From positions 10,228,818 through 10,292,817 of the forward strand of contig OZ037772.1 of assembly GCA_964035545.1 (NCBI GenBank): a stretch of 64,000 nt of DNA, read 5' to 3'. Shown here in pieces: positions 11,034 through 61,180 of this stretch. Every line of letters starts with the position of its first letter. The stretch's first letter is position 1. Below the pieces are notes generated by a model. That model saw only the letters and a program-made list of their open reading frames with translations. It ran no database searches and was not told where the DNA came from. A program made the translations under genes and the position numbers. This DNA comes from Bugula neritina. Taxonomy: Eukaryota; Animalia; Bryozoa.

Positions 11034-14000
11034 TCACTTCAGCTGATAGAACTGAACTTGATCATTAAAAAAATACCAAACTGGAACTACTAGAGTAGAG
11101 CCAGTGACGTGGAGATCAGGTAGGAAACTTTCTTCCGTAGATATCATGGTTAGTAACTTGCCTGTAGAGATAAAAGACATAATGTCCTTTTTTAGGAATC
11201 AAAGACAATATAAAGAGAGTGCAGTTTATTTGTAGCCACTAAATAAAATATCTGAATAAACTCATTATCTAAAATAACAATGCAGGTATATTGTAAACTA
11301 TGTGTATTCTACACAGTAACTAACCTGTATGTAATGATAGTACACAGAGTGTGGTAAGTTCAGTACCATCAGCCACAAGTACAAACTCATCTCTATAGCA
11401 GGTCACTCCACAAGGTTCAGCCACATCCTTACACTGCCAGATGATGTCACCTGATGAGGTGTCTACTTTGTATACTAGAGATGAGTAATGCTGAGATATA
11501 ATAATTGAGTTGTTATCTGCAGCAGACAGATGTACAGGATTATCAGTAAGTAGAGGACAAGGTAAAATGTTTACTACCTCTCCATTCAGAGAGTAGAGTA
11601 CTAGAGTCTTATTCAGCCTGTCAGGAATAGCTATCTGATTGTTTATGATGGCAAGCTGATTCCTGCTCTCCAATTTCTTTGTATGTGTCCAGCTGGTAAT
11701 GGACCTCCCTTCAAGGTCATGAACTCTTACAGTTGAATCAGAAGACAGAGTATATATCCTATCATTATGTACTGAGATACTCTTCACAGTGCTACCTTTA
11801 ATAGAGATGAATGATCTAGTAACTTTGTTGTTCTCATCTATCCTGTCTACACCTCCAGCACACTCAGCATATGTGACACCTTTATAGGTGTGGACGGACT
11901 CGCAGTATGGAGAAACTTTAAGAGCTTTTATCAGTTTTACAGACTTGGGTGGTGGAGGTGAGAGAACTAGTCCTTGTTCAGGAGTTATACTTGCTGTCCT
12001 TTCATTGGTCAGCTCAATCTCTATATTTCTTTTCTCTCCTGTAATAAAATATTGACATGCATGACAAGGTAATATAATATAAAACAGCTGATAAATCAGA
12101 AAAACTAGCAGATATATAAACATACATGTATATTTTGGTGCATCACTACACAAACAGCAGTGCTATAGCAGCACTGCAATGACCATGCACTATTCATTTA
12201 AAAAAATAATATTACAATTTTGCTTTCCGTACCAGATTATTTTTATGGGAATCAACTATTAAAAAAATTTAAAAAATCAGCAGCTGCCTTCATGTCAACA
12301 AAATATTAAAATCAATTCTAATGATATTCTATTTAGTGATATACTACTATATTAAATTAGGTTATGTTCATCAAAAACTTGTATTAGTATTCTCCAAGAG
12401 TAAGCACAGCTATTGCACAAGTGTGTAAATCTACAATGTAGTTGAGAGAAGCTTACAGATTGGGGGAGATGTAGGCCACTCGCCCTTTCAGTGTAAATTA
12501 AACACTAAAGATCCCCACTACCATTATTTACCTTATAACTTAGTTTAATAGGATATTGTAGGGGTGTAGTGTGGCAATAATACAAACCCAGTTTTTGAAA
12601 ATAATAGTGCCTTCACCATGTTAATTTAAAACATGATTTATAATGTGTTTTTATAACACAGATCAATAGAGTGAAATACAAGATCATGAAAATGTAACAG
12701 TTTAAAACATAGCTATACCTTACATACATATATACCTCAAATTCAACAAGTCAAAATATAATTACTTGATTGTGCTACTTGAATACAGCTAGATAAAAAG
12801 TGTCATAAAGGTGAACAACATTCATAGTTCTATAGAACTATGAATGTTGAATGCAAAATAACTTAAAACAACTTATTGAATATATTCAACATGTTGTTTT
12901 AAGTTATTTTACATGGATAACATATAAAACTGACCTTTGACCTCCACAGATGTTACAAGATCAAAATGTGCCAACTTAGGAATCTCTTCTGTCAACAGTC
13001 TATCAATCTCCTTCTTCATATCACGATATGACTTGATTGTGTCAACCTAACAGTATCATATATAATCCAGATATTGTGACACTGTGTAGCAGGTGTTTGG
13101 AAGGTATATAGTTATAGTTATAGAGAATGGCAGTGCTGAGAATGAACAATGAAATCAACAACAATTCTATATTTGACACCAACAAAACCATCTAAAAAGC
13201 AGCATTGCAATGCAAAAGACTGATGGATCGAGATTGCAATGCAGTATAAGGGAAACAGACTACTACCAACTATAAATGGGTAAGGTTTATTCTAATAAAC
13301 TGTACCTTAAGGGAGCACAGATTTCAAAGCTGACGCTAATGTGCAGTGGGCTATGCTATTAAATACAGTATCCTAATATAGCATATTATACAGCATCTTC
13401 TAGTATTATACAGTATCATATAGTATTATACTGCAGTATCCTATAACACTATACAGTATTTTATAGTATTATACAGTATCATATAGTGTTATGTAGTGTC
13501 CTATGGTACTATACAGTATACTATGATATTAAAAGTATTATGGTATTATTGTATTATACAATATCCTACGGTATTATAATACAGTGTCATATAGTGTTAG
13601 TATACTGGGTACCTTGCAGACCGACAGCAAATAAAATGGAATACTCTGGTGACTGGAGGCCACTCTGGTAAACTTAACTTGAGCTGAGCCACAATGACAG
13701 CATTTTTCAAATTACTTCATTCCAAATTCTTATAAATCATTACACAATGAAGTCCCATTAACTACTACAGGCTGCATGTTTTAGCATGTACACAAAGATA
13801 CATGTATTTAAAAAGCATTTTTTCCTTTCTAATTTATATATCTGATAGAGCAACATAATTTTATGTTTATGCCTTTGAGGGTGGCATAAATGTTGGACAG
13901 TCCTGTGTAATACAGCATGATATGTTATAGTACAGTTCCATTACTGCCTCTATTGGTTATTACCTAATTCATTTTCTACTTATGTACTCTTTAGATGTTA

Positions 14001-16107
14001 TTTACAGATAGAGAAACAATGAATATAGAATTTATATAAAGACATTGAAATATATATAAACTGCTACAGATCCTAACATCTACTATATATGCTCTGCAAC
14101 TAACCTCATGACTTTGGTCTAACTTAGCCTCTATTCCTGTTCTGTGATTATACAGCTCACAATATCTAGCCCCCACTTCCTCTACCATGAAATTCACGGC
14201 TCGACTCTCAGTCTTTTCTCTCTTCTCCACCAGTTCTTTTTCCAGTTTGTCATACTTCTGTTGAATAGCTGCTATCTAAATACAGTCACATTGAATGTTA
14301 GACAGGATAGAATAGTTTGAGGAGTGTCTGAGTGTATAACCATCTCACATCTATCACTACAGTATCTCCCTCTCAGATAAGTATGAAGAGAATTATAAAT
14401 AAACTCTCACAGTTACTATATGATCTTTATAATTATGAAATTTAAAAACCATGTAATAATCACCTGATCATCACGCTGTTTACATAGCATCCCCAGTAGC
14501 TTCTTGGTTTCAGTTCGAAACCCATCAATAATTGCAGCTATCTGTTTGTAATAACCAGATAAGTTGTCTTCTCTTGTCTTCAACTTTGTGACTTCCACCA
14601 GCTGCATTGTTAAATCTTTCAATGTCAAGAGTGTATGCTGTGATGTACCTAAAATAATATATACAAAGTAACGTATAAGCTGTTGTGTACCTGAATCATG
14701 TAATATATATAGCAAGTAAACAGAAGAATAGACACTTACCATCATCACATACACCAGCTGTAGGTACACACTGAGTACAGAGTAGTTTGAGACAGACTTT
14801 ACAACCCAAAGTATACTCTACGTCTCCATGCGTCTCACACATTCTCTTCTCTAATTTAGCAGCACGAGCTTTATACTCTGCCATATTAATTCTAGAATGT
14901 TCTTCAGACACAATATCATGATCCTATAATAAATATATACGAAAGAGTTTGTGGCTTACTAACGATAGTATATCTAAGATTGCATATATATATATTATAA
15001 TGGTCCTAATGTCATGATCATATAATGCCTAAAGTATATATGCAATAGTATATGGTTTAATAATATTTAAAGCTATATTGTACAATCTATTACAATAAAA
15101 GCATGAATGTAAGAAATCAATCTTGAGAGTTATGTCTCTTGATCATAACTTTTATTTAATGTATAATAAACTACAGCATGCTGATCGATAATTAATGTTA
15201 GGAGGTAAAGACACAAAACCAATTCATGTGAGCAAATGAGTGAAAACAAGTGAAAATAAATGATTGTTCTCGATTGATGAACCAAATCAAATATTGTAAA
15301 TAATTTGTTGCAAAGCCATTAAATTATTTCTCTGCAGAATATCACCAAAATGGCAAAGCTTTCAGTTTCAGAATATCACATATAAGGATATACACACAGA
15401 AAACAAGAAAAATAGTGTTAACTTACAATGACATGTTTAGCACAGTACAGTTTAGAACAAACTAAACAATACATCAGAGCAGGTGTATTATTCACTCCTG
15501 ACTTTGTACAGACTTCACAGAGTATAGACTTATCTATCTGTTTCATCTGGTCTGCTGTTGGTAACTTATCAGGTGTTGTATGGAATACTTGTCTATAAAA
15601 TAAATGATGAATTTATTAGTGATAGATCATTAACTATAGGCTATATAATATATAAAGTATAATAATTATATATAAAAGTTTACAGTGTAACACTATCTGT
15701 TATATAACCTGGCATAGCAATACAGGTATACTACATATAGCATAAACACATATAGTAAATACCATCATATTATTCATATTATAATAAACATTATTATAAA
15801 ATGCCTACATAATATTATGTAACATATTATATTATACATTATTATATTATTCACCTACCTACCTACGATATTTATATTACTATAAACATTAATTATGAAA
15901 TATATAATATTATGTAACATATTATTATGTTATTATATTATTCACCTACCTACACATTCCACATTTAAGAGCATTCAGCCTTCCATAGAATTCATTCAAA
16001 CACTTGTCACAGTGTGGGTGAGTACAAGGTAATGCCTTACATTCCTCTAACTTGAGTTTAGATAAACAAATAGTACATCTCACCATTGGTTGTGGTTTAG
16101 ATGCCAT
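11034..16107 (-). CDS. TRIM copy A: RING-Bbox1-Bbox2-coiled coil-NHL-like beta-propeller E3 ligase, 605 aa
   Basis: Exons 16107-15950, 15592-15427, 14923-14740, 14648-14464, 14275-14105, 13046-12935, 12038-11325, 11161-11034; GT-AG introns; total 1818 nt in frame. C3HC4 RING CTIC...CTHPHCDKC...CGMC; B-boxes CEVC..CLVC..CAKH and CETH..CKVC..CTQC; repeating beta-blade pattern (e.g. PCGVTCYRDEFVLVAD). Confidence 0.9.
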
Positions 16108-18390: not shown

Positions 18391-19030
18391 CATTAGGCTA
18401 CTGTTAACTGACATCAATATATATAAAAATTATGTGTAATTAAACTATGTTAACTTAACGACATTATGTATAATTACTAAAACATGCAGTAAAATAAATC
18501 TTTCAGATTAAAATGCTTCGTAATACGATGATGTTATGTAAATTAGACTGTCCTAAGTCTACTTATAATATAACCATATTTTATAGGAAGAAGGCAACTC
18601 CTTTAGTATGCTCCATATATGGAATGTCTTACAAATAGTATAACATTGTATATTATTTAGTATATTAGTATGACACATTAGTATACCATATTATGTATAA
18701 TGTCAACAGCTGCTTTATAATTTGACTATCAGTTGATAAATAAACAAGTGGAGATAACTGGTAATATGTACACTACTGGTTTACTACCATTGATTACATA
18801 CAAATCAGTGAAATAGAATACAGTTTAGAATGTGACACAATAATACAATAGGCTATAGATCACAAATATAACACAGTACAATAAAATACAATGCAATATA
18901 ACATAATATATAACATAAGGCAATACAATATAACACTATATGCAAAGTGATACTACAAATACATAAAAGGGGAAATATTGCAACAAAAATTACTGACCCT
19001 TTTTAGATTATCCAGTCTATTAGTTCACTT

Positions 19031-19153
19031 TCACTTCAGCTGATAGAATTTAACTTGTCCATTATATACAAGAGCTTACTGGAACTACTAGAGTAGAGCC
19101 AATCTAGATGAGGTATGTTGTTTTTTTCAGGAAATGTCCCAATTAGTAACTTT
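19031..19153 (-). pseudogene. Orphan, frameshifted copy of the TRIM terminal exon
   Basis: Matches the last exon (AAGTTACTAA...GGCTCTACTCTAGTAGTTCCAGT...TATCAGCTGAAGTGA) with an internal small deletion. Confidence 0.8.
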
Positions 19154-21595
19154 CTCAAAATTATGAACACATTTATTGTAGAAATCAAGGAAATAAAAAT
19201 TGTAAGTATGAGCAACTCTAAACCCTCAGCTGAAAGCTACAAAGCCAAATCTTAATAATTGAACTTTAAAAACAACTCATTACCTATAATTGCAGGAAAC
19301 TGGAATATTCAATTAGGGCGGAGTTATTAATTAACTCACTTTTTGTGTGTCCAATCGAAATAGTGGATCTCTTTTATAGGTGTATTATTAGCATTCATAG
19401 ATCTTATTGTACATACAGTAGAACCCAATTATTTGCCAACTATTGAATGATGTTGATTTTTTTCCACCAATACAAGATAATATGACTCACTAGTAAAGCT
19501 CCCCCAAGGATATTTATTATTTCTACTGTATAGGTTAATATTACTATAACATGTGACCATGCAGCTCCATAAAGTGTTGCTTGTATATGTTGAGTAAAAG
19601 TACATAAATATTGTAGATGATGTAACATACAGTGTTGACTATTAAAGACAAAACATGGTTCCTAATAAATTTCTGTAACTACTCAGACTAGAGATGTTCC
19701 TATCTCACATCTTAAACAGCTCTGCTTGCAATACAAAAAGGTAACTCTTCACAGGATACAACTTCAATTGCTAGTAACTATAAAATTGTGCTTTGTACAA
19801 TGTTTACTAGTAGAGATGGAATTGGTTACTTAAGAGGTACACAAAAAGTTATATTGAATCCTTAAATTTCATATATCATATGATCTGCAGAACTTGATAT
19901 ATAGCATGTCAGTTTGATTGTTGTTGCTGCATGGAATTTAGTTTGATTTTGTAAAAATGTTTAAAGAGTTTTGGTGAACGGAATGTGATGGTTGACAAAA
20001 CTTTATCTGGAACTTATTTCTTGTGTGCAGCAGACACTGTTTTGGCTTGATCTCTGCTTTTATTACATAACATTTGAATTATAAATAATGATCCCTTACT
20101 GAAAAAGAATGTCTCTGTATGCCAATACTTAGTAGATAGAAGTCGTTTTGCTTTTTCACCAAATGAAGGGTAGTTCAAGTTTGTAGAAATATCAGCTGCC
20201 ATATCTTTTGTAGCGAGAGCTTTTTAGTGAATGCTTTAATTCCAGCTTATAATATCACTTAATAGTACACTGCATAATAAGATGGAAAAAGTAAGGCTTT
20301 GAGTTAAGCTGCACTCAAATTATTAGTGGCTATAATCTCTAGAAAAAAGCTTTTCACTTGTATTAAGATCCTTTCCACATCGTTTGAGAAAGAAGAACTT
20401 TTGCAGAGTAATAAAACAGTTTATACTAAATGAAAATGGATTGTTTATAAACTACTGACTAATTCCTATTCGTAACATGTCCAATAGCTGTGTGATATTT
20501 TCTAAAAGGTGATAACAAAAAAAATTACAGAGTATAAAATTTTGGATTTCTCTTTATTAGACAAAGAATCAATTGCCAGATAAAAAGCAACATTATCTTT
20601 ATCAAAGAAACTGCTTATTGTAAGGGAATAATGTGCTATTTCTTGTTACTAATAATAATTTCATATACCATAGCTGAAAACAGTTTCAAATCATACCATA
20701 TCTGAATGCAACACAGCAATCTGTCCATATTAATAGCAAAATCTTATTCATTAGTAATTTCTAAGACAGCAAACATAGACACAATTAATTTGGCTGGATA
20801 ATTGCAAATAACAAAAGTTTATATAAGTCAGGATAAAAAATAATAGGAAATTTAAAGAAAATTTTGCAAATTTAAAGTACATAATATATATGTAGCCATC
20901 ACCAATGAAAACTTTTATAGCCTATAAATTTTACAGATTAATTATAGAAATAGATTGCATATGTATATAATTGATATAAAGTACAATAGACTGGATATTC
21001 CGCTACATAATACACCAGTACAAGAAATTGAGTGATAATAATGAATTAAAAATAGTGCTTGTAAAATTTAGTGGATATAGCCTGTCTAGTAGTCCACTGT
21101 AAAGTAGGAAGTTAAACATGCAGACGTCTATAGTGAAGTAAACTGACTTAGTTGACTTATTAAAGCAGTGATGTACTGGGAAGGTAACTCTGAATGTATG
21201 ACTCAACATTTCGTGTTCTACAAAGCATAACAGGGATGTCCAGTATATACAATATCTGCCATGTTATAATAATACAATACTATGAGACATTAGTATATAC
21301 ACAGTATTGTTAACAGTTGTTTTATAATTTAACTATTGATTGAAAACTAATCAGGGGATATAACTGGTAATAATGTGCCCACTACTGGTTTACTAACATT
21401 TATGTAATCTGATACAATATGCATAATTTTTATATGCAATAAAATGCAATACAGCACAAGAAAATAATACAACAAAATGCCGTGCAAAGCCAACAAATGC
21501 AAAGAAAGATTACAAACATGACTTGGAAAGGCATTCTGAACCCCTCAAAAATTTTACTCACCCTCATTTGAGGATCCCAGTGTATTAGTTCACTT

Positions 21596-24500
21596 TCACT
21601 TTAGCTGATAGAACTTAACTTGTCCATTAAAAGAGTTTACTGGAACTACTAGAATAGAGCCAGTGACGTGGAGATCAGGTATGTGAATGTATTCAACTGT
21701 AGATATCCTGGTTAGTAACTTGCCTGTTGAGATAAAAGACATAATTTTCTTTCTTAAGACTCAAAGATAATATAAAGAGAGTGCAGTTTATTTGTAGCAA
21801 ATAACTATAAATATGAATGAACTCATTTCATCAAATTATAACACATATATTTCATACACTATATGTAATCTACACAGTAACTAACCCGTATGTAATGATA
21901 GTACACAGAGTGTGGTAGGTTCAGTATAATCAGCCACAACTACAAACTCATCTCTATAGCAGGTCACTCCATGAGGTTTAGCCACATCCTTACACTGCCA
22001 GATGATGTCACCTGATGAGGTGTCTACTTTGTATACTAGAGATGAGTGACGCTGAGATATAATAATTGAGTTGTTATCTGCAGCAGACAGATGTACAAGA
22101 GCATCAGTAACTAGAGGACAGGGTAAAGTGTTTACTATCTCCCCATTCAGAGAGTAGAATACTAGAGTTTTATTCAGCCTGTCAGGAATAGTTATTTGGT
22201 TGTTTACGATGGCAAGCTGATTTATCCACTTTGAGTCATTTGCATGAGTCCAACTGGTGATAGTCTTGCCTTCAAGGTCATGTACTCTTACAGTTGAATC
22301 AGAAGACAGAGTATATATCCTATCATTATGTACTGAGATACTCTTCACATGACCACCTTTAAGAGAAATGAATGATTTAGTTACTTTGTTGTTCTCATCT
22401 ATCCTGTCTACACCTCCCTTACACCCAGCATATGTGACACCTTTATAGGTGTGAACAGACCTGCAGTATGGAGAAACTTCAACAGAGTTTATCAGTTCTA
22501 CAGATTTGGGTGGTGGAGGTGAAACAGCCAGTCCTTGTTCAGGAGTTATACTTGCTGTCCTTTCATTGGTCAGCTCAATCTCTATATTTCTTTTCTCTTC
22601 TGTAATAAAATATTGACATGCATGACAAGGTAATATAATATAAAACAGCTGATACATCAGAAAAACTAGCAGATAAGTAAGCAAATTCATGTATATATTT
22701 TGTGCATCACTACACAAGCAGCAGTGCTATAGCAGCACTGCAATGACCATGCACTTTTCATTTTAAAAAATTAATAATATAATTTTGGCTTTTTAGACCA
22801 AATTATTTTTATGGAAATCAACTATTGAAAAAAATTTACTGCAAGCAAAAAAAAAACAAACCAGCAGCTGCGTTCATGTCGACAAATTATTAAAATCAAT
22901 TCTAATGATATTCTATTTAGTGATGTACTACTATATTAAATTAGGTTATGTTCATCAAAAACTTGTATTAGTATTATCCAAGAGCACAGCTATTGCACAA
23001 GTGTGTAAATCTATAGAATAGTTGAGAGAAGTATACAGATTGGGGGAGATGTAGGCCACTCGCCCTCTCAGTGTAAATTAAACACTAAAGATTTCCACTA
23101 ACATCATTTATCTTAAAACATAGTTTAATAGTAGTTTTAGAAAATGTTAGTTCCTTCATCATGTTAAGTTAAAATATTAGATATAATATATTGTTATAAC
23201 ACAGGTCAATAGAGAGAAATGCCAGATGAGGAAAATGTAACAGTTAGCAACATATAGCTTACATACATAATACACCTTCAATCTAAAAGTCAAAATATAT
23301 ACTTCCGTGATGATTTTACTTATAAATACGGCGAGATACAAAATGTCATAAAAATGAAAAACTGTTATAGTTCTATTCAATATCTTTTAAATAATTTTGC
23401 ATGGATAACATATAAAACCAACCTTTGACCTCCACAGATGTTACAAGACCAAATCGTGTCAACTTAGGAATCTCTTCTGTCAACAGTCTATCAATCTCCT
23501 TCTTCATATCACGATATGACTTAATGATGTCAACCTAACAATATAATATATACATACAATGTGACACTGTGTAGCAGGTGTTTGGGCGTTGTCTGCTATT
23601 ATAGAGAATGCTAGTGTTGAGTATGGACAATGATATCAACAACAATGCTGTATTTGACACACACAAAACCATCTAAAAACAGCAGTGCAATGCAAAATAT
23701 TGAAGGATAGAGATTGCAATGCAGATTAGGGAAACAGACTATACTACCAACTATAAATGGGTAAGGTTTACGCCAATAAACTGTACCCTATAAGGAAGCA
23801 CAGATTTCAAAATTGACGCTAATGTGTGGTGGGCTATGCTATTAAATACAGTATCCTAATATAGCATTATACAGCATCTTCTATTATTATACAGTATCAT
23901 ATAGAGTATTATACTGCAGTATACTACGATAGTATACAGTATCCTACGGTATTATAATACAGTGTCATATAGTGTTAGTATACTGGGTACCTTGCAGACC
24001 GACAGCAAATAAAATGGAATACGCTGGTGGCTGGAGGCCACTCTGTAAAACTTAACTTGGGCTGAGCCACAATGACAGCATTTCTCAAATTACTTCATTC
24101 CAAATTCTTATAAATCATTACACAATGAAGTCCCATTAACTACTACAGGCTGCATGTTTTAGCATGTACACAAAGATACATGTATTTAAAAAGTATTTTT
24201 TCCTTTCTAATTTATATATCTGATAGAGCAACATAATTTTATGTTTATGCCTTTGAGGGTGGCATAAATGTTGGACAGTCCTGTGTAATACAGCATGATA
24301 TGTTATAGTACAGTTCCATTACTGCCTCTATTGGTTATTACCTAATTCATTTTCTACTTATGTACTCTTTAGATGTTATTTACAGATAGAGAAACAATGA
24401 ATATAGAATTTATATAAAGACATTGAAATATATATAAACTGCTACAGATCCTAACATCTACTATATATGCTCTGCAACTAACCTCATGACTTTGGTCTAA

Positions 24501-26306
24501 CTTAGCCTCTATTCCTGTTCTGTGATTATACAGCTCACAGTATCTAACCCCAACTTCCTCTACCATGAAATTCACTGCTCGACTTTCAGTCTTTTCTCTC
24601 TTCTCCACCAGTTCTTTCTCCAGTTTGTCATACTTATGTTGAATAGCTGCTATCTAAATACATTCACATTGAATGTTAGACAGGATAGAATAGTTTGAGG
24701 AGTGTCTGAGTGTATAACCATCTTGCATCTACCAAAAAAGTAGCTTATCTCAGATGATTATAAAAAAGTTGTAAACAAACTCTCACAGCTTCTATATGAT
24801 CTTTATAATTATCAAATTTAAAAACCATGTAATAATCACCTGATCATCACGCTGTTTACATAGCAACATCAGCAGCTTCTTGGTTTCAGTTCTAAACTCA
24901 TCAATGTTTGCAGCTATCTGTTTGTAATATCCAGATAAGTTGTCTTCTCTTGTCTTCAACTTTGTGACTTCCACCAGCTGCATTGTTAAATCTTTCAATG
25001 TCAAGAGTGTATGCTGTGATGTACCTAAAGTATATACAAAGTAATGTATAAGCTGTTGTGTACCTGAATCATGTAATATATATAGCAAGTAAACAGAAGA
25101 ATAGACACTTACCATCATCACATACACCAGCTGTAGGTACACATTGAGTACAGAGTAGTTTGAGACAGACTTTACAACCCAAAGTATACTCTACGTCTGC
25201 ATGTGTCTCACACATTCTCTTCTCTAACTTAGCAGCGCGAGCTATATACTCTGTCATATTTATTCTAGAATGTTCTTCGGCCAGATTGTCATGGTCCTAA
25301 GATAAACATATACAAAAGAGTTTGTGGCTTACTAACGATATTACATCTAAGATTGCATATATACATTATAATGGTCCTAATGTCATGATCATATAATGCC
25401 TAAAGTATATATGCAATAGTATACAATTTAATAATATTTAAAGATATATTGTACAATCTATTACAATAAAAGCATGAATGTAAGAAATCAATCTTCAGAG
25501 TTATGTCTCCTTGAACATAACTTTTATTTAATGTATAATAAACTACAGCATGCTGATCGATAAATGTTAGGAGGTAAAGACACAAAACCAATTCATGTAA
25601 GCAAATGAGTGAAAACAAGTGAAACTAAATGAAAGTTTTCGATTGATGAATCAAATCAAATATTGTAAATAATTTGTTGCAAAGCTGATTAAATTATTTC
25701 TCTGCAAAGTATCACCAAAATCTCAAGCTTTCAGTTTCAAAATATCACATATAAAGATATATACACAGATCACACAATAAATAGTGTTAACTTACAATGA
25801 CATGTTTAGCACAGTACAGTTTGGAACAAACTAAACAATACACCAGAGCAGATGTGTTATTCACTCCTGACTTTGTACAGACTTCACAGAGTATAGACTT
25901 ATCTATCTGTTTCATCTGGTCTGCTGTTGGTAACTTATCAGGTGTTGTATTGAACACTTGTCTGTAATATAAATGATGAATTTATTGTTGATAGATCATC
26001 AATTAGTTTTATCTTAGAGAACATTTATCAATCAACGCTCATAGTATAATTTGCTCCGTTCCACCTCGTGATATTATATTAACTGTAACATATACTAGAC
26101 AGTAGACGTAGCGAAAATCACATAGCAAATACTTTGACATAAACTTACCGACATATTCCACATTTAAGAGCATTTAGCCTTCCATAGAATTCATTCAAAC
26201 ACTTGTCACAGTGTGGGTGAGTACAAGGCAGTGCCTTAATTTCCTCTAACTTGAGTTTAGATAAACAAATAGTACATCTCACCATCTGTTGTGGTTTGGA
26301 TGCCAT
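21596..26306 (-). CDS. TRIM copy B (intact, 605 aa)
   Basis: Exons 26306-26149, 25961-25796, 25296-25113, 25024-24840, 24653-24483, 23534-23423, 22599-21886, 21723-21596; same exon sizes as copy A; no stop seen. Confidence 0.9.
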
Positions 26307-27005
26307 TTTGTTCTACAATTACATCATATTAGGACGACATAATCATATTGATTACAATGATTTCACATCAATTACCAATACCCATACAAGTGGATAACAA
26401 GAGATTTAAAAGAAGATTTGGGCATTGCCCAAGTTCCAAGAACAGCAAACAATTCTATCATCAACTATCTGATATTGTTATTGAATTATTTACATCTACA
26501 TCTAGCAAGGGCTGACACTGGACTTGGTAGCAACTTTGCGTTTGAGGCTGTCGTCATTTCGACTGTATTGTCAACCAACTTACAGTTAGTGAGCCATTAA
26601 CATTCAACCTATTATTATTAAAGTTATTAATTAAATCATAATGAAAATGACAATACTTTCAACATTCATTTTCATATTAGTTTAGTGAGACTGAGACCAA
26701 GCATCGCAATCTGCCAGTCACAATCACAATGACAATCACAGTGGCAATCAATAAATTCAATCATGTATTTTTAAAACCAAAGTGATGGATGATTACACTT
26801 ACAGTTAATGTTATAACCATAATCCTAATAGGAAAAAGTAGAAGTTGAATATCAATATGGTAAATTAAAATTGGCTCACCAAAAAAGTGTTCGCTGAGTG
26901 ACTCAAGCTCTTCAATTCTAATAGTAATTGTGTCCAATCGAATGGATATGATGACCTACTTCTAGTTCTACTCAAAACTGCTTTGCAAGCTGCTACAAGG
27001 AAGTT

Positions 27006-27060
27006 GAAAATGAAACTGCGCTACAGATGAGTAATAGAAATTTCCCGAGTTGGAAATTTT
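27006..27060. promoter_or_regulatory. ISRE-consensus, AP-1-like and kappaB-like cluster upstream of TRIM B
   Basis: GAAAATGAAACT 27006-27017, TGAGTAA at about 27028-27034, GGGAAATTTC (minus) 27037-27046; about 125 bp upstream of a G|GTGAGC donor at 26880. Confidence 0.55.
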
Positions 27061-29947: not shown

Positions 29948-32893
<2,946 letters not shown>

Positions 32894-37182: not shown

Positions 37183-37308
37183 TCACTTCAGCTGATATAA
37201 TTTAACTTGTAAATATAGAAAAGTGTTTACTAGAACTACTAGAGTAGAGCCAATGTAGATGAGATATAATGTAGTTTTCTTCAGTAGATGCCCCAATTAG
37301 TAACTTCC
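37183..37308 (-). pseudogene. Second orphan, frameshifted TRIM terminal exon
   Basis: Homologous to 19031-19153 and shares the same internal deletion (CATCTA(C/G)ATTGGCTCT). Confidence 0.8.
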
Positions 37309-42700: not shown

Positions 42701-45700
42701 TATATATGCTCTGCAACTAACCTCATGACTTTGGTCTAACTTAGCCTCTATTCCTTCTCTGTGATTATACAGCTCACAGTATCTAACCCCCACTTCTTCT
42801 ACCATGCATGAAGTTCACTGCTTGACTCTCAGTCTTTTCTCTTTTCTCCACCAGTTCTTTCTCCAGTTTGTCATACTTCTGTTGAATAGCTGCTATCTAA
42901 ACACATTCACATTAAATGTTAGACAAGCTAAAAAAAGTTGGGGAGTGTATAACCATCTTGCGTCTGCCAAAAAAGTAACTTATCTCAGACGGTTATACAG
43001 AAAACTATAAATTAACTCTCACAGTTTCAATATGATCTTTAAAATTATCAAATTTAAAAACCATGCAATAATCACCTGATCATCACGCTGTTTTCATAGC
43101 AACATCAGCAGCTTCTTGGTTTCAGTTTGAAACTCATCAATGTTTGCAGCTATCTGTTTGTAATAAGCAGATAAGTCGTCTTCTCTTGTCTTCAACTTTG
43201 TGACTTCCACCAGCTGCATTGTTAAATCTTTCAATGTCAAGAGTGTGTGCTGTGATGTACCTGAAGTAATATATACAAAGTAATGTATAAGCTGTTGTGT
43301 ACCTGAATCATGTAATATATATAGCAAGTAAACAGAAGAATAGACACTTACCATCGTCACATACACCAGCTGTAGGTACACACTGAGTACAGAGTAGTTT
43401 GAGACAGACTTTACAACCCAAAGTATACTCTACGTCTGCATGTGTCTCACACATTCTCTTCTCTAACTTAGCAGCACGAGTTTTATACTCTGTCATATCA
43501 ATTCTAGAGTGTTCTTCAGACACAACGTCATGATCCTACAACAAAGTTATATTATAGAGTAGTACTTAGTTTATAATTGATGACATTGTATATAAAAAAG
43601 CATGTATATGTATCCTAATGGCCATGTCATTATGCTATAATGTAGAAAATATACACCCAACATTGCATAACTCATTCAAAAAATATATAAAGCCAAATTA
43701 CGCAGCATATAATATGTTATAGTGCCACGAATGTTATAATTAGTTAGTCTTGAGAGTTGTATGTACACTTGATCATGACTTTATCCAACGTATAACAACT
43801 CACATTATGATTTTTGCTGATCAATACATTCCAAAATTTAAATTTGTGTGAACATATGAATGAAAACGAATGAATAATTTCATTTACCAAACTAAAAAGT
43901 TATTTTATCAAATATTGCAGAGTTTTTTTTGTGAAACCAGCAAATTGTTTGTCAGTAAAACATAATAAAAACCCAGAGGTTTTGGACTAATATTATTTTG
44001 AAACATAGCCAGTTGCTACGGCTATCCAGTTTTACAACACATAAGGGAAACATGCAAAAAGAAATTAAAGAGTGCTGACTTACAATGACATGTTTAACAC
44101 AGTAAAGTTTAGAACAAACTAAACAATACATCAGAGCAGGTGTATTATTCACTCCTGACTTTGTACAGACTTCACAGAGTATAGACTTATCTATCTTTTT
44201 CATCTGGTCTGCTGTTGGTAACTTATCAGGTGTTGTATCGAACACTTGCCTGTAATATAAATGGTGAATACGTGCAACATTATCTGCTGTAGGCTATAAG
44301 TTTTGTTACGATACAATGATACAACGAGGTAGAGTTAAATACCAACTGTTGCTAGTTTTATTATTGCTAAATTAAAATCCTGCTTTTCTTAAAATACCTG
44401 CCCTTGTGTTTACATGCAGTTTTCTTTTAATTAGACCCATGTAAGACTCACTACACATGACTAGGGCAACACTAAAACCTAGACCATGGTTGCTTCTGTG
44501 TGTTGCAACTATAGCAGCTAAAAATAGCATGCAATGAAATCCTAAAATTAATTTTTAATAATAATTCTAAAATGCCACCAGCTTATAACCTGTTATAAGT
44601 TTTATCAACAAGCAATCAAAAATTTAAAACTAATCAAAAGTTGTTTCTAGAACTAACTTGCTTGCGTCTAAAGGTTTGAAAAAATGTTCTCTAGAATGCA
44701 ACTGAGATATATTTGAATATTTCAATATAATATTACGGCATAAACAATGTGTCATATAGATTCTGTAAGAAGAGGATGTTGTAATGCTGGCTCTTTCCAT
44801 ATCAACAGTACGCAGTAACTTTTGATTATGTATAGGGAGAACAATGTTTCCATCTATAAGCCACTGTATAGAACAACTATATAGGTCTGTAGACTGAACA
44901 AACATTTCTCAAAGTCTTTTGAAAATAGTTTTTACTAGCTCCTATTTTACACATCTCAAAATATCAAATGACATGAAACCTTTAGTCATATTGGTGCCGT
45001 GATATTCTATGGATGATGTAAGCTTGCATTAACCACGGCATAGCAAAATGGAATTGGTGCGAGGTGCTCTGATTAAACACATTTAGCACTCAGTCATAGC
45101 TTTGCATAACATTTATTATTGTGACAAATTATTCTGATAAAATCTATCTGACTCTATACACAATTACTGAACCAAGGCTTTATTGTACAAGTTATTCACA
45201 AAAATAATAGAGTAAAAAATCAAAGATCTCCATTGTACAAATAACAATAGAACAATTGTGTGAAAATCTCAGTGCGTTATTAATGTTGTTTTTCTCTATT
45301 GTCACAACTTTCTATAACTAGAAAAGCTAAGCTATTTCCAAATAGCATTTAGGTTGCTCAATAACAAAGTACGTTTAGTTAGGCATTACATCTCATTGAT
45401 ATGCTCCATTGATCTCTAATATATTACATTGGAGAACTTGAACTGACTAACTTTTGATTTAAACGTAGTCATTGACAACGTGAATACATTCTAATACTTA
45501 ATTGACTTAAGGGTTTAGTAACAAAGCTTTCTGTCAACATTCAGTCAATCAATTTTTGATATACAAGTATCTGTATCTAACCCTACACTCTGGTTATAGT
45601 ACCATGTCATAGTGACATATAATATCTCTATTGACTTCACAGTAAAGCAAACTATAGGTCTCTGTTTGTATAGGATATATTACAACTCATATCAAGTAGG

Positions 45701-46766
45701 GTTTGGAACCTATTTATAGCACCACCTGACTGTAAGATATATTATATTACATATGCAGACAACATATAATAAATCATGTGGCAGTACAAACATTTATTAT
45801 TTGGATTCTGCTCTGATAAAGTATATTTTACTCAAACCATAGCTACTGGGTTGTAGGGTTTGGTTATGCAACCAAAAATTAAAGGAATAGCATAATGAAA
45901 TAAAAGAGTTATATTGTATGTAACAACAGATCTATTGGGTGCCGTTTCTTTGTGCTTCTTGTGTATTGTATTATGACCACTTCAAAAAACTAGAAAAGCT
46001 TGACAAATTGTCAAAAGAATAAGAAAACAAAGCATATTTCGTTTCCAATCTAAATCATTGAGTGCACCCAACAAGGTGGTAGGTGTTGAAAAACTGCCTA
46101 AAAACTGCAACCGCATTAGAACAATGAATTTAATTTTAAACCTAATCTACTTAATGATGACCGTATTGCATTGTGAATAATTCAACTTACAAAAACTTGG
46201 AACAAAAAAAACTAAGACCAGCTTATTAGTGCCGATCATGACTTTAACCTTAGCATAAGTAAAATATCAAGACTTTATTAGACATTTTGATCAATGAGGT
46301 AGTTATCAGTATGAAACACTAAAATCACTGAAACGCTTCTCTAATGCTCACATTAAAAAAATGCACAATACTGCATTTAAGTAAAACACCTGATTTTATT
46401 ATATATACTGCATATTAAAATTGTTATAATAAAACATCTTATAATACAAATTTGTCAACATCTACTTATTTTTCTTGGTAATAATAATATATAAATCAGG
46501 ATATATGCACTGCATAGCATGAACCATGAGGTTATTGATCAACATTATTATGAAATATATGACATTATGTAACATATTATACTATATATTATGATATTAT
46601 TCACCCACCGACATATTCCACATTTAAGAGCATTCAGCCTGCCATAGAATTCATTCAAACACTTGTCACAGTGTGGGTGAGTACAAGGTAGTGCCTTACA
46701 TTCCTCTAACTTGAGTTGAGATAAACAAATAGTACATCTCACCATTTGTTGTGGTTTAGAAGCCAT
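39781..46766 (-). pseudogene. TRIM copy C (pseudogene)
   Basis: Exons 46766-46609, 44249-44084, 43535-43352, 43260-43076, 42896-42722, 41695-41584, 40785-40072, 39911-39781. In-frame TGA at 43096-43094; a 4-nt CATG duplication at about 42803-42810 makes that exon 175 instead of 171 nt. Confidence 0.9.
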
Positions 46767-49866: not shown

Positions 49867-52800
49867 TCACTTCCACTTGAGCTGATAGAACCTAACTTGG
49901 GAATACAAGTGTACTAGAACTACTAAAGTAGAGCCAGTGATGTGGAGACCAGATATGTAATAACTGTTTTCAGCAGACATCCTGGTTAGTAACTTGCCTG
50001 TTGAGATAAAAGACATAGTGTTCTTTTTTACCAATCAAAGATAATATAAAGAGAGTGCAGTTTATTTGCAGCAAATAACTATAAATATGAACGAACTCAT
50101 TTCATCAAATTATAACACATGTATTTCATACACTATATGTATTTTACACAGTAACTAACCTGTATGTAATGATAGTACACAGAGTGTGGTAGGTATAGTT
50201 TCATCAGCCACAACTACAAACTCATCTCTATAGCAGGTCACTCCACGAGGTGAATCCACATCCTTACACTGCCATATGATGTCACCTGATGAGGTGTCTA
50301 TTTTGTATACTAGAGATGAGTAATACTGAGATATAATAATTGAGTTGTTATCTGCAGCAGACAGACGTACAGGAGTATCAGTGAGTAGAGGACAGGGTAA
50401 AGTGTTTACTACCTCCCCATTCAGAGAGTAAAATACTAAAGTCTTATTTAGCTTGTCAGGAATAGCTATCTGATTGTTTATGATGGCAAGCTGATACCTC
50501 CTCTCCAATTTATCTGGATGTGTCCAGCTAGTGATAGACTTCCCTTTAAGGTCATGAACTCTTACAGTTGAATCAGAAGACAAAGTATATATCTTATCAT
50601 TATGTACTGAGATACTCAACACATCGATACCCTTAATAGAGATGAATGATTCTGTTACTTTGTTGTTCTCATCTATCCTGGCTACACCTTTTCTACACCC
50701 AGCATATGTGACACCTTTATAGGTGTGAACAGAATAGCAGAATGGAGAAACTTCAACAGCGTTTATCAGTTCTATAGACTTGGGTGGTGGAGGTGAGAGA
50801 ACCAGTCCTTGTTCAGGAGTTATACTTGCAGCTCTTTCATTGGTCAGTTCAATCTCTATATTTCTTTTCTCTTCTATAATAAAATATTGACATGCATGCC
50901 AAGGTAATATAATATAAGACGGCTGATACATCAGAAAAACTAGCAGATATGTAAACATACATCTATATCTTTGTGCATCACTACACAAACAGCAGTGCTA
51001 TAGCAGCACTGCAATGACCATGCACTTTCCATTTAAAAATAAACATTATAATTTTGACATTATAGACCAGATTATTTTTATGGGAATCAACTATTGAAAA
51101 AAATTTACTGCAGAAAAAATCAGCAGCTGTGTTCATGTCAACAAAATTTTAAAATCAATTCTAATGATAGTCTATTTTAGTGAGATACTACTATATTAAA
51201 TTAGGTTATGTTCACCAAAAACTTGTATTAGTATTCTCCAAGAGTAAGCACAGCTATTGCACAAGTGTGTAAATCTATAATGTAGTTGAGAGAAATATAC
51301 AGATTGGGGGAGATATAAGCCACCCCCCTATAAATTAAATGTGTAAATTAAACACTAAAGATTCCCACTAATTATAGTTTATTAGTAGGTTATATACTGG
51401 CAATAATACAAACCCAGTTTTAGAAAATATTAGTTCGTTCATCATGTTAAATTAAAATATTATATACAATATATGGTTATAACACAGGTCAATAGAGAGA
51501 ATTGCCAGATGGGGAAATGTAACATTTAGCAACATATAGCTTACACACATAATACACCTTCAATCTAAAAGTCAAAATATACTTCCGTGATGATGTTACT
51601 TAAATATGGCTAGATACAAAATGTCATAAATGAACAACGTTTATACTTCTATTCAATATATTTCTTTAATTAAGTTTGCATGGATAACATATAAAACCAA
51701 CTTTTGCCTTTCACAGATGTTACAAGATCAAATTCTATCAACTTAGGAATCTCTTCTGTCAACAGTCTATCAATCTCCTTCTTCATATCACGATATGACT
51801 TAATGATGTCAACCTAACAATATTATATATACAGACAATGTGACACTGTGTAGCAGGTGTTTAAAAGTTGTCTGCTATTATAGAGAATGCTAGCGTTGAA
51901 TATGAACAATGAGATCAACAACAATGCTGTATTTGACACCAACTAAACCATCTAAAAACAGCATTACAATGCAAAAGATTGCAGGATCAAGTGTGAAAAG
52001 CACAATTCATGGGAAAAAAGCTTCTACAAGCTAATTATATGCCCTATAGTATTATACAGTGTCCTATAGTAATATACAGTGTGCTATAGTATTATACAGT
52101 ATCCTATAGTAATATACAGTGTCCTATAGTAGCGAATTCTTTTCATTACAATATATCTATTTATATTACCTAAACGATCTACAGATGTTATATAAACTAT
52201 CAAACTGCCACAAATACACACACCCTAACATCTACTATCAATCCATACTCTACAACGAACCTCATGACTTTGGTCTAACTTAGCCTCTATTCTTTCTCTG
52301 TGATTATAAAGCTCACTGTATCTAACCCCCACTTTTTCTACCATGAAATTCACTGCTTGACTCTCAGTCTTTTCTCTCTTCTCCACCAGTTCTTTCTCCA
52401 GTTCGTCATACTTCTGTTGAATAGCTGCTATCTAAATACATTCACATTAAATGTTAGACAAGCTAGAAAAATTTGGAGAGTGTCTGAATATATAACCATC
52501 TTGCATCTACCAAAAAATAGCATCTCTTAAATTATTATAAAGAAGCTATAAACAAACTCTCACAGTTTCTATATGATCTTTATAATTATCAAATTTAAAA
52601 AACATGTAATAATCACCTGATCATCACGCTGTTTCCATAGCATCCCCAGTAACTTCTTGGTTTCAGTTCGAAACTCATCAATGTTTGCAGCTATCTGTTT
52701 GTAATAAGCAGATAAGTTGTCTTCTCTTGTCTTCAACTTTGTGACTTCTACCAGCTGCATTGTTAAATCCTTCAACGTCAAGAGTGTATGCTGTGATGTA

Positions 52801-54085
52801 CCTAAAGTATATACAAAGTAATGTATAAGCTGTTGTGTACCTGAATCATGTAATATATATAGCAAGTAAACAGAAGAATAGACACTTACCATCGTCACAT
52901 ACACCAGCTGTAGATACACACTGAGTACAGAGTAGTTTGAGACAGACTTTACAACCCAAAGTATACTCTACGTCTCCATGTGTCTCACACATTTTCTTCT
53001 GTAACTTAGCAGCACGAGCTTTGTATTCTGTCATATTAATTCTAGAATGTTCCTCGGCCAGATTGTCATGGTCCTAAGACAAATATATACAAAAGAGTTT
53101 GTGGCTTACTAACGATATTACATCTAAGATTGCATATAATATACATTATAATGGTCCTAATGTCATGATCATATAATGCCTAAAGTATATATGCAATAGT
53201 ATACAATTTAAAAATATTTAAAGATATATTGTGCAATCTATTACAATAAAAGCATGGATGTAAGAAATCAATCTTGAGAGTTATGTCTCCTTGATCATAA
53301 CTTTTATCTAATGTATAATAAACTACAGCATGCTGATCGATAAATTTTAGGAGGTAAAGACTCAAAACCAATTCATGTGAGCAAATGAGTAAAAACAAAT
53401 GAAAACAAATTAATGTTTTCAATTGATGAACCAAATCAAATATCGCAAACAATTTGTTGCAAAACCATTAAATCATTTCTCCGCAAAGTATCACCAAAAT
53501 CTCAAGCTTTTAGTTTCAGAATATCACATGTAAGGATATATACACAGAAAACACGAAAAATAGTGTTAACTTACAATGACATGTTTAGCACAGTACAGTT
53601 TGGAACAAACTAAACAATACATCAGAGCAGGTGTGTTATTAACTCCTGACTTTGTACAGACTTCACAGAGTATAGACTTATCTATCTGTTTCATCTGGTC
53701 TGCTGTTGGCAACTTATCAGGTGTAGTATTGAATACCTGTCTGTAACATAAATGATGAATTTATTGTTGATATATCATCAATTAGTTTTATCTTAGAGAA
53801 CATTTATCAATCAACGCTCATAGTATAATTCGCTCTGTTCCACCTTGTGATATTATATTAACTGTAATATATACTAGACAGTAGACTTAGCGAAAACCAA
53901 ATAGCAAATACTTTGACATAAACTTACCGACATATTCCACATTTAAGAACGTTTAGCCTTCCATAGAATTCATTCAAACACTTGTCACAGTGTGGGTGAG
54001 TACAAGGTAATGCTTTACATTCCTCTAACTTGAGTGTAGATAAACAAATAGTACATCTCACCATTGGTTGTGGTTTGGATGCCAT
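49867..54085 (-). CDS. TRIM copy D (intact, 606 aa)
   Basis: Exons 54085-53928, 53740-53575, 53073-52890, 52801-52617, 52431-52261, 51813-51702, 50873-50160, 49997-49867; in frame, no stop seen. Confidence 0.88.
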
Positions 54086-56538: not shown

Positions 56539-59500
56539 TCACTTTAGCTGGTAGAACTTGACTGATTCATTAGAAGAGTATACTGGAACTACTAGAGTAG
56601 AGCCAGTGAGGTGTAGATCAGGTATCTATCTGTTTTCAGTAGATATCCTGGTTAGTAACTTGCCTATTGAGATAAAATACATATTGCTCTGTTTTAAGAA
56701 TCAAAGATAATAAAAAGAGAGTGCAGTTTATTTGCAGCAAATAACTATAAATGTGAATGAACTAATTTCCTCAAATTATAATGCATGCATATCATACACT
56801 ATATGTATTCTACACAGTAACTAACCTGTATGTAATGATAGTACACAGAGTGTGGTAGGTTTAGTTTCATCAGCCACAAGTACAAACTCATCTCTATAGC
56901 AAGTCACTCCATAAGGTCTAGCCACATCCTTACACTGCCAGATGATGTCACCTGATGAGATGTCTACTTTATATACTAGAGATGAGTAACGCTGAGATAT
57001 AATAATTGTGTTTTTTTCTGCAGCAGACAGAAATACAGGAGTATCAGTAAGTAGAGGACAAGGTAAAGTGTTTACTATCTCCCCATTCAGAGAGTAGAAT
57101 ACTAGAGTTTTATTCAGCCTGTCAGGAATAGCTATTTGATTGTTTATGATGGCAAACTGATTTGTCCACCTTGTTTTTTTATCTGCATGAGTCCAACCGG
57201 TGATAGTCTTGCCTTCAAGGTCATGAACTCTCACAGTTGAATCAGAAGACAGAGTATATATCCTATCATTATGTACTGAGATACTCCACACAAAACTACC
57301 CTTAATAGATATGAGTGATTTAGTTACTTTGTTGTTCTCATCTATTCTGTCTACACCTCCTCTACACCCAGCATATGTGACACCTTTATAGGTGTGCACG
57401 GACTGGCAGTATGGAAAAACTTTAGCAGAGTTTATCAGTTCTACTGACTTGGGTAGTGGAGGTGAGACAACCAGTCCTTGTTCAGGAGTTATACTTGCTG
57501 TCCTTTTATTGGTCAGCTCAATCTCTATATCTCTTTTCTCTTCTGTAATAAAATATTGACATGCATGACAAGGTAATATAATATAAAACAGCTGATACAT
57601 CAGAAAAACTAGCAGATATGTAAACACACATGTATATTTTTTTGCATCACTACACCAACAGCAGTGCTATAGCAGCACTGCAATGACCATGCACTTTTCA
57701 TTTAAAAAATTATTATTATAATTTTAGCCTTTTGGACCAGATTATTTTTATGGCAATCAATTATTGAAAAAAATTTACTGAAAAAATAACAGCAGCTGCA
57801 TTCACGTCAACAAAATATTAAAATCAGTTCTAATGATATTCTATTTAGTGATATACTACTATATTTAATTAGATTATGTTCACCAAAAACTTGTATTAGT
57901 ATTCTCCAAGAGTAAGCACAGCTATATATTGCACAAGTGTGTAAATCTATAGAATCGTTGAGAGAAGCTTACAGGTTGGGGGAGATATAGGCCACTTCCC
58001 TTTTTCAGTGTAAAATACAAACTAAAGATTCCCACTATCATCATTTACCTTATACCTTGGTTTAATAGGATATTGCAGGGGTGTAGTGTGCCAGTAATAC
58101 AAACCCAGTTTTAGAAAATAATAGTGCCTTCATCATGTTAAATTAAAATATTATTTATAATATATTTTTATAACACAGATCAATAGAGTGAAATACCAGA
58201 TGATGAAAATGCAACAGTTGGCAACATAGCTATACCTTACATACATATATACCTCAAATTCAAAAGTCAAAATATACTTACTTGATTATGTTACTTAAAT
58301 GCAGCTATAGATAAAATATTTCAGAAAGATAAATAGGGTTATTAAGCTATTCATTATCTTGTTTTAAATAGTTTTGCATATTAATAACATAAAACTGACC
58401 TTTAACATCTATAAAACTGACCTTTGACCTCCACAGATGTTACAAGATCAAAATGTGCCAACTTAGGAATCTCTTCTGTCAACAGTCTATCAATCTCCTT
58501 CTTCATATCACGATATGACTTGATGATGTCAACCTAACAATATTACATATACACACAATGCGACACTGTGTAGCAGGTGTTATAGAGTTGTCTGCTATTA
58601 TAGAGAATGTCAGTGTTGAGTATGAACAATGAGATCAACAACAATGCTGTATTTGAGACCAACAAAACCATCCAAAAGCAGCATTGCAATGCAAAAGATT
58701 ACAAAATCGAGAGTGAAAAGCACAATTTAGAACAAGAAGCATTTACAAACGAATGGGCAAACTTTACACTAACTATCTGCAGTGCCCTACGTGGATCATA
58801 CAGTTTGCTATAGTATTATACAGTTCCCTACAGTATTATACAGTACCCTATAGTATTATACAGTGTTATATAGTATTATACAGTATCTTATAGTATTATC
58901 CAGTGTCCTACAGTATTATACAGTTTCCTATAGTATATTATACAGTATCCTATAGTATTATACAGTGTCCTATAGTATTATACAGTATCCTATAATATTA
59001 TACAGTGTCCTATAGTATTATACAGTTTCCTATAGTATTATACAGTATCCTATAGTATTATACAGTGTCCTATAGTATTATACAGTGTCCTATAGTATTA
59101 TACAGTGTTCTATAGTATTATACAGTGTTCTATAGTATTATACAGTGTCCTATAGTATTATACAGTGTTATATAGTGTCATACAGTATGCTGTAGTATTA
59201 TGCAGTATTCTATATAGTATCGAGAATTCTTTTCATTAGATTATATATATTTATATTATTTAAATGATCTATAGATGTTATATAAAATATCAAACTGCTA
59301 CAGATACACACACCATAACATCTACTATCAATCCATACTCTGTAGCTAACCTCATGACTTTGGTCTAAATTAGCCTCTATTCCTTCTCTGTGGTTATACA
59401 GCTCACGGTATCTAACCCCCACTTCCTCTACCATGAAGTTCACTGCTTGACTCTCAGTCTTTTCTCTCTTCTCCACCAGTTCTTTCTCCAGTTTGTCATA

Positions 59501-61180
59501 CTTCTGTTGAATAGCTGCTATCTAAATACAGTCACATAAAATATAGGAGAAGATAGTTTGGTTTGAGGAGTGTCTAAGTGTATATGGTCATCTTACATTT
59601 CCCAAAAAAGTAACTTATCTCAGCTGGTTATACAGAGAACTATAAACAAACTCTCACAGCTTCTATATGATCTTTATAATTATCAAATTTAAAAACCACG
59701 TAATAATCACCTGATCATCACGCTGTTTCCATAGCAACATCAGCAGCTTCTTGGTTTCAGTTCGAAACTCATCAATGTTTGCAGCTATCTGTTTGTAATA
59801 ACCAGATAACTTGTCTTCTCTTGTCTTCAACTTTGTAACTTCCACCAGCTGCATTGTTAAATCTTTCAACGTCAAGAGTGTATGCTGTGATGTACCTAAA
59901 GTAATATATACAAAGTAATGTATAAGCTGTTGTGTACCTGAATCATGTAATACATATAGCAAGTAAACAGAAGAATAGACACTTACCATCATCACATACA
60001 CCAGCTGTAGGTACACACTGAGTACAGAGTAGTTTGAGACAGACTTTACAACCCAAAGTATACTCTACGTCTGCATGTGTCTCACACATTCTCTTCTCTA
60101 ACTTAGCAGCACGAGCTATATACTCTGTCATATTTATTCTAGAATGTTCTTCGGCCAGATTGTCATGGTCCTAAGATAAACATATACAAAAGAGTTTGTG
60201 GCTTACTAACGATATTACATCTAAGATTGCATATATACATTATAATGGTCCTAATGTCATGATCATATAATGCCTAAAGTATATATGCAATAGTATACAA
60301 TTTAATAATATTTAAAGATATATTGTACAATCTATTACAATAAAAGCATGAATGTAAGAAATCAATCTTCAGAGTTATGTCTTCTTGAACATAACTTTTA
60401 TTTAATGTATAATAAACTACAGCATGCTGATCGATAAATGTTAGGAGGTAAAGACGCAAAACCAATTCATGTGAGCAAATGAGTGAAAACAAGTGAAACT
60501 AAATGAATGTTTTCGATTGATGAATCAAATCAAATATTGTAAATAATTTGTTGCAAAGCTGATTAAATTATTTCTCTGCAAAGTATCACCAAAATGTCAA
60601 GCTTTCAGTTTCAAAATATCACATATAAAGATATACACACAGTAAACACGAAAAATAGTGTTAACTTACAATGACATGTTTAGCACAGTACAGTTTGGAA
60701 CAAACTAAACAATACATCAGAGCAGGTGTATCATTCACTCCTGACTTTGTACAGACTTCACAGAGTATAGACTTATCTATCTGTTTCATCTGGTCTGCTG
60801 TTGGCAACTTATCAGGTGTAGTATTGAACACTTGTCTGTAACATAAATGATGAATTTATTGTTGATAGATCATCAATTAGTTTTATCTTAGAGAACATTT
60901 ATCAATCAACGCTCATAGTATAATTCGCTCTGTTCCACCTTGTGATATTATATTAACTGTAATATATACTAGACACCAGACGTAGCGAAAATCACATAGC
61001 AAATACTTTGACATAAACTTACCGACATATTCCACATTTAAGAGCATTTAGCCTTCCATAGAATTCATTCAAACACTTGTCACAGTGTGGGTGAGTACAA
61101 GGCAGTGCCTTAATTTCCTCTAACTTGAGTTTAGATAAACAAATAGTACATCTCACCATCTGTTGTGGTTTGGATGCCAT
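56539..61180 (-). CDS. TRIM copy E, premature TAG in last exon (truncated protein or incipient pseudogene)
   Basis: Exons 61180-61023, 60835-60670, 60170-59987, 59895-59711, 59521-59351, 58533-58422, 57542-56826, 56663-56539. TAG at 56628-56626 (ENR*IPDL), 29 codons before the normal TGA. Confidence 0.85.
58809..59212. repeat. 20-bp intronic minisatellite (TATAGTATTATACAGTGTCC), about 20 copies
   Basis: Tandem array in a TRIM E intron; shorter or degenerate versions in the same intron of A-D. Confidence 0.9.

Follow-up and report, generated by a model that had tools for sequence, protein, structure and literature searches.

A tandem array of five TRIM genes, copies A to E, occupies much of the 64,000-nt window of Bugula neritina DNA analysed here (the window being the whole stretch, to whose positions all coordinates refer), and one predicted ligand face of the encoded proteins is diversified by positive selection. 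We consider it rather probable, partly by analogy with TRIM5 and the finTRIMs, that the family is a diversified cytosolic pathogen-recognition or restriction repertoire, which evolves by birth and death and is coupled to a predicted E3 ligase.

The five units, all on the minus strand, were delimited by self-comparison of the window. Manual and alignment-based modelling gave eight coding exons per copy, with GT-AG introns of conserved phase, encoding in order a RING, B-box1, B-box2, a putative coiled coil and a six-bladed NHL-like propeller. The first-pass annotation had listed five paralogs; the five tandem copies are real, but it had missed that C is a pseudogene and that a stop interrupts blade 6 of E. 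Intact reading frames remain in A, B and D only. The gene models and the remnants are as follows.

11034..16107 (-): TRIM copy A, intact, 605 aa; gene model, joints at its introns seen spliced at family level
15950-16107, 15427-15592, 14740-14923, 14464-14648, 14105-14275, 12935-13046, 11325-12038, 11034-11161 (-): the coding exons of copy A
11325..12038 (-): exon 7 of copy A, linker and propeller blades 1-5, carrying the hypervariable top-face sites (structure model, fold match, entropy)
21596..26306 (-): TRIM copy B, intact, 605 aa; gene model
39792..46766 (-): TRIM copy C, pseudogene; gene model
49870..54085 (-): TRIM copy D, intact, 605 aa; gene model
56539..61180 (-): TRIM copy E, premature stop in blade 6; gene model
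18940..19205 (-): decayed remnant of a further deleted paralog, an orphan last exon with its 3' flank
37088..37359 (-): second decayed remnant, likewise an orphan last exon with its 3' flank

Copy C is broken by an in-frame TGA in exon 4 (43094-43096) and by a frameshift in exon 5 due to a 4-nt duplication (about 42803-42806); its intron 1 has grown to 2359 nt and its end is frameshifted. In copy E, a TAG in exon 8 (56626-56628) cuts the last blade short by about 29 residues, which probably makes it a null, or else represents an assembly or allelic variant. The two orphan last exons, at about 19.0 and 37.2 kb, mark additional lost copies.

By domain content the A-E family is a TRIM family, and E3 ligase function is predicted from its RING. 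This N-terminal C3HC4 RING, encoded by exon 1, retains its ligands (C11, C14, C28, H30, C33, C36, C49 and C52) in all five copies, with an Arg following the last Cys; its match to Pfam zf-RING_2 (E 5e-4) lies under the curated cut-off. Exon 2 encodes a B-box1-type domain (ANCHR-like_BBOX, E 1e-4) and exon 3 a B-box2 (zf-B_box, E 5e-5, 23.9 bits against a cut-off of 24.1), and in the place expected for a coiled coil the translations show about 150 residues of charged, helix-like sequence. No signal or transmembrane segments were evident in the window translations. The C-terminal domain is, according to models and fold search, a beta-propeller and not a B30.2/PRY-SPRY domain. AlphaFold2 models were built for exon 7 of copy A, which folds into five four-stranded blades (predicted local distance difference test score 95.6), and for the complete propeller of a relative from the bryozoan Watersipora, which has six. 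The best fold match (Foldseek/VIA) is the NHL domain of Brat (Z 21.8, TM 0.73), followed by Mei-P26, Thin, TRIM3, TRIM2 and TRIM71, with YWTD propellers trailing these NHL matches by only 1-2 Z. The family profile matches TRIM3 and Brat (E 3e-11), and the ESM neighbours of the propeller bear PF01436, the Pfam NHL family. However, PF01436 itself matched neither the window exons nor ten Watersipora-type relatives, and a filamin domain is absent from the A-E family proteins; we therefore call the domain NHL-like.

We found that the two halves of these proteins evolve differently. Among the five copies, amino-acid identity reaches 91-98% in the RING and B-boxes and 90-95% over the RING, B-boxes and coiled coil together (RBCC), compared with 77-83% in the propeller. 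The RBCC, previously described as invariant, is thus conserved but not invariant, 59 of its 356 alignment columns being variable, as are 92 of 252 in the propeller. The synonymous distance (dS) is about 0.15 in both halves, and the nonsynonymous distance (dN) is threefold higher in the propeller (0.12) than in the RBCC (0.04). Homogenisation of the RBCC by gene conversion was rejected as the source of this contrast given the nearly equal dS, with the exception of the B/E pair, whose 5' halves resemble each other more than their propellers do. The eight propeller motif series reported earlier for A-E were found exactly as quoted, and their clustering in discrete patches exceeds chance. In codon models of our own implementation (F3x4 frequencies, empirical Bayes; not PAML or HyPhy), the likelihood-ratio statistic (LRT) for the propeller is 45.5 for M1a/M2a and 45.4 for M8a/M8, with a dN/dS ratio (omega) of about 5.5 at 14% of sites; it is 35.5 without copy C and 20.8 with only the intact A, B and D. 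The RBCC has an omega of 0.34 and a weak selected class of 2%. With 13 exon-7 sequences the LRT rises to 125, and it remains 88 when double and triple hits are allowed, 80 when the indel loop is also dropped and 32.5 when multiple hits are combined with gamma-distributed rate variation. A screen of exon 7 for recombination gave no signal (a test resembling the pairwise homoplasy index, p 0.33). Tests of four other causes for the propeller diversity, namely local hypermutation, multi-nucleotide mutation, rate variation and recombination, led us to reject each of them.

The variation is concentrated on one side of the propeller. Sites with an entropy above 2 bits among 37 variants were defined as hypervariable, and 15 sites qualified:

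370, 372, 386, 408, 409, 411, 446, 449, 451, 493, 509, 510, 533, 535, 550: hypervariable sites (copy A numbering, exon 7; entropy)

Thirteen of them lie in the d-a and b-c loops, which make up the RNA-binding top face of NHL domains (PMC4015489), the other two sit at position 2 of strand a, and the bottom face has none. All 15 are therefore on the top face (Fisher test, 6e-9), and the enrichment holds for the strict loops alone (13/15, 4e-7). When all regions share one synonymous clock, the top face has an omega of 1.7-1.8 (above 1, p about 1e-6), compared with 0.38 in the bottom loops and 0.37-0.46 in the strands; a separate M0 fit to the top face alone yields 0.95, but this fit frees the synonymous clock over 59 heterogeneous codons. 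Synonymous differences at hypervariable codons are not elevated (0.12 vs 0.10-0.12). Pairs of variants differ on average at 12 of the 15 sites, and the residues Y, W, F, H and R make up 32% of those found there against 7.5% in other loops, a fourfold difference. The RNA contacts of Brat, R875, F916 and N933 (PMC13245067; for residue roles also PMC4015489), were located in the alignment by their spacing of 41 and 17 residues. Site 411, which is hypervariable, is the counterpart of R875, and site 450 that of F916; N933 corresponds to a conserved Arg, whose counterpart b-c positions in blades 1, 4 and 5 (386, 509 and 550) are hypervariable. The RING, B-boxes, putative coiled coil and propeller frame evolve under purifying selection, and positive selection acts on one ligand face. 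Since the variable sites are not scattered over the structure and top-face omega exceeds 1, the diversifying selection on a predicted binding surface coupled to an intact RING that had been proposed for this array is supported; the pathogen origin of the ligand, also part of that proposal, is of another order and is weighed below.

The family extends far beyond the array, a point absent from the first-pass annotation, and the bryozoan genome carries dozens of TRIM genes of this type. The exon-7 profile matches 491 clusters at 50% identity, and we collected 32 non-window variants at least 70% identical from metagenomes labelled B. neritina, none of them more than 85% identical to any window copy. 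The closest relatives lie on Joint Genome Institute contigs labelled AY690838, an accession that the mitogenome paper on Bugula neritina cites (PMC2678162). Paralog loci from related contigs share the exon structure of the window copies; in two of them the frame stays open through exon 7, and in one it is broken within exon 1. A candidate kinase-propeller fusion in related locus L009 (2316-6699) was rejected, since the MAP3K-like kinase ends in a stop and the 5'-truncated exon 7 follows about 480 nt further on. Full-length relatives with 27-36% identity are proteins of Watersipora subatra encoded on several chromosomes, and Watersipora, as judged from these sequences, has a parallel family of such propeller TRIMs. 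The nearest ESM Atlas neighbours are mollusc B-box/NHL clusters. A related-locus search of metagenome contigs gave no match, and a Watersipora protein used as query for full-length homologs retrieved only its own near-duplicate, which left us without an annotated Bugula protein of full length.

Family members seem to be transcribed. In two RNA-like runs, family contigs span the exons with hardly any intron, and their joints agree with introns 1, 3, 4 and 6. The loose end of one such contig matches a non-coding first exon present 5' of B, D and E, and not of A or C. The corresponding segments are:

26880..27060 (-): promoter and non-coding first exon of B, with a CCAAT box, AP-1 site TGAGTCA and donor GTGAG (motifs, RNA-like contig end)
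54670..54850 (-): promoter and first exon of D, ISRE-like box at 54797-54808 (motif match)
61750..61930 (-): promoter and first exon of E, ISRE-like box with one mismatch (motif match)

The B promoter further contains a kappaB-like site, GGGAAATTTC, and a box resembling the interferon-stimulated response element (ISRE), AGTTTCATTTTC, at 27006-27017; both sit just 5' within the promoter/first-exon segment. The exact ISRE consensus occurs twice in the window against 0.13 expected, both times inside TRIM promoters, and the consensus recurs, as AGTTTCACTTTC, in a distant paralog in related locus L002. These boxes suggest induction driven by interferon regulatory factors (IRF). Copy A is devoid of the B/D/E-type promoter and non-coding first exon, and may be promoter-less or use another start; its upstream region (16322-17955) matches that of the broken paralog in related locus L004 (68-2308). 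Another repeat (46954-47493, 928-1470, 19222-19548 and 37419-37623), which has a splice donor besides CCAAT, GC-box and AP-1-like motifs, is positioned 5' of the first coding exon of C and of both orphan last exons, and is possibly a second promoter type.

Further features of the window were recorded beside the TRIM genes. Intron 3 (e.g., 14649-14739; 88-91 nt) is 97-100% identical across the five copies, exceeding the exons, and holds an inner duplicate, TTCAG|GTACAC..ACAG, of the acceptor together with the beginning of exon 4, which four other paralogs retain; a regulated alternative acceptor is possible. Synaptotagmin-like C2-domain exons are duplicated 5' of B and E (27996-29013 and 63309-63629), which, together with the near-identical 5' halves of these two copies, points to a recent segmental duplication. 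Between B and C the array is broken by exons of a glutaredoxin/glutathione S-transferase-like gene with a CPFCCKV motif (30900-32974, minus strand), probably prostaglandin E synthase 2. A young Gypsy long terminal repeat (LTR) retrotransposon is found at 1522-8928, with 305-bp LTRs 99.7% identical, a 4-bp target duplication (GTAT) and, after pol, an additional zinc-finger-like open reading frame of 366 codons (2101-3198); an 81% related Gypsy element adjoins the paralog in L002. The window also contains a 28-bp minisatellite of 28.6 copies (29149-29949) and a TACAC/TATAC pentamer array of 256 copies (34059-35340).

We propose a mechanism in which tandem and segmental duplication yields copies, many of which die, as is observed here, and in which the effector and scaffold are kept by purifying selection and some 15-20 top-face residues rewritten by positive selection, likewise observed, so that each copy would present a different binding surface. 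The members, apparently transcribed and spliced, would be induced through the ISRE-like box by IRF. By comparison with TRIM5, TRIM21 and TRIM56, the putative coiled coil would dimerise the protein and present two propellers to a repetitive or clustered foreign target, for example a virus-derived protein, ribonucleoprotein or RNA, or an intracellular microbe's surface; binding would gather the RINGs, and ubiquitination would destroy the target or start signalling. That the ligand is pathogen-derived we infer from the ISRE-like promoter box, the birth-and-death evolution and analogy. Some points weigh against this reading. Conflict with selfish elements, the control of symbionts and gamete or allorecognition systems also give rise to positive selection. 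The RNA-like runs, whose RNA nature is guessed, come from other individuals; their signal is at family level and cannot rank expression or be assigned to single copies. Finally, the ISRE-like matches are non-independent copies, and those of E and one other paralog contain mismatches. A bolder form of the pathogen-recognition reading, which we put forward tentatively and at somewhat less than even chances, is that a germline-encoded, IRF-inducible set of intracellular antibody-like receptors, dozens strong, arose independently in bryozoans and perhaps also in molluscs and further lophotrochozoans, and that in these receptors the RNA face of the NHL domain would have become a hypervariable paratope fused to an E3 ligase, possibly reading viral RNA or ribonucleoprotein by sequence or shape.

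Among the alternatives, genome defence fares best, although we regard it as unlikely. The propellers, with a Brat-like RNA face, would here recognise selfish elements, retrotransposons among them, by their RNA or ribonucleoprotein and silence or degrade them, for instance in the germ line, in a race like that of the KRAB-ZNF proteins. It would agree with the RNA-binding nature of the nearest solved folds (the NHL domains of Brat, Mei-P26, TRIM71 and TRIM2/3), with variable sites that include the equivalents of Brat R875 and F916, and with the young Gypsy elements adjoining copies in the window and L002; yet transposons beside tandem arrays are commonplace, and the ISRE-like promoter favours infection. 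The top face is positive on average over five blades (net charge +3.4) and the bottom face negative (-4), but single variants range from -3 to +9 on the top face, so RNA binding cannot be general.

Somewhat less probable still is recognition of symbionts or non-self conspecifics, with the receptors policing the bacterial partners of Bugula, whether intracellular or resident in tissues, or acting as a downstream part of colony fusion and rejection. Bugula is a colonial host with bacterial symbionts (PMC7576161), and fungal non-self receptors are selected on the same propeller face (PMC4986451). The lack of any variant from the other sample above 85% identity to a window copy could also mean extreme haplotype polymorphism. 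Animal allorecognition determinants are, however, mostly cell-surface or secreted proteins, unlike the A-E proteins with no evident signal or transmembrane segments, and the family is dispersed, in Watersipora over several chromosomes, instead of forming a single locus. Largely refuted, and by far the least probable, is the view that there was no arms race and that the loops of redundant duplicates drift under relaxed constraint or change by local hypermutation or gene conversion: the two broken copies of five, a propeller-wide omega of just 0.6-0.9 and the greater likeness of the B/E 5' halves would suit it, but the excess of omega on the top face over the equally exposed bottom loops, the lack of a synonymous excess and the persistence of the selection result under multi-hit and rate-variation models all contradict it.

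Arms-race TRIM repertoires have been described mainly as a vertebrate SPRY invention, and TRIM-NHL proteins are regarded as few-copy conserved RNA regulators. Searches for papers about TRIM-NHL expansions in bryozoans, bivalves or invertebrates gave no relevant hit, and we found no description of this bryozoan family, most subscription papers lying outside the search. Like the vertebrate PRY-SPRY TRIMs under diversifying selection (TRIM5alpha/TRIM22 and the fish finTRIMs; 'group 2' TRIMs), the A-E proteins join an RBCC effector to a C-terminal domain for recognition in which positively selected surface loops cluster, and the tandem expansion, pseudogenes and lineage-specific turnover of TRIM5 and the finTRIMs follow the same birth-and-death pattern as the cluster analysed here. 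The bryozoan sensor, however, is a six-bladed NHL-like propeller in place of B30.2/SPRY, and the host is a lophotrochozoan, whereas the fast-evolving SPRY TRIM group is described as restricted to vertebrates (PMC3503706, a review of TRIM evolution).

With the TRIM-NHL proteins of class C-VII, or subfamily C (Brat, Mei-P26, LIN-41/TRIM71, TRIM2/3 and TRIM32), the family shares a six-bladed propeller and the order RING-B1-B2, followed by its putative coiled coil, its variable residues lying on the RNA face of those proteins. Yet these are conserved regulators present in few copies, 3-5 per genome (PMC4015489), whereas the bryozoan family comprises dozens of copies with a hypervariable top face, and its propeller is only 10-18% identical to theirs, with neither a Pfam NHL match nor a filamin domain. 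TRIM56 likewise combines a RING with a degenerate NHL-like propeller, and both are required against RNA viruses, the propeller binding viral RNA, TRIF and a viral protease (PMC11768893); it is, however, a single gene with a long disordered linker and not an expanded hypervariable repertoire, and the likeness drawn here is one of architecture. In the fungal HNWD/NWD NLRs (HET-D/E/R), positive selection also falls on a beta-propeller, where it targets a few equivalent positions of each blade on the interaction face (PMC4986451), but they are NACHT-WD40 proteins with near-identical internal repeats under concerted evolution, whereas in the bryozoan family the blades diverge and a RING ligase serves as effector. 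What emerges here is an invertebrate with the signature of a restriction factor on the NHL ligand face, for which the variable positions, the scaffold and a candidate IRF site are now defined. The family is a natural library of a soluble propeller binder joined to a ligase, and offers a testable handle on specific intracellular recognition in invertebrates that lack antibodies and canonical interferon; were the antibody-like receptor reading true, it would be the invertebrate counterpart of TRIM5/finTRIM immunity.

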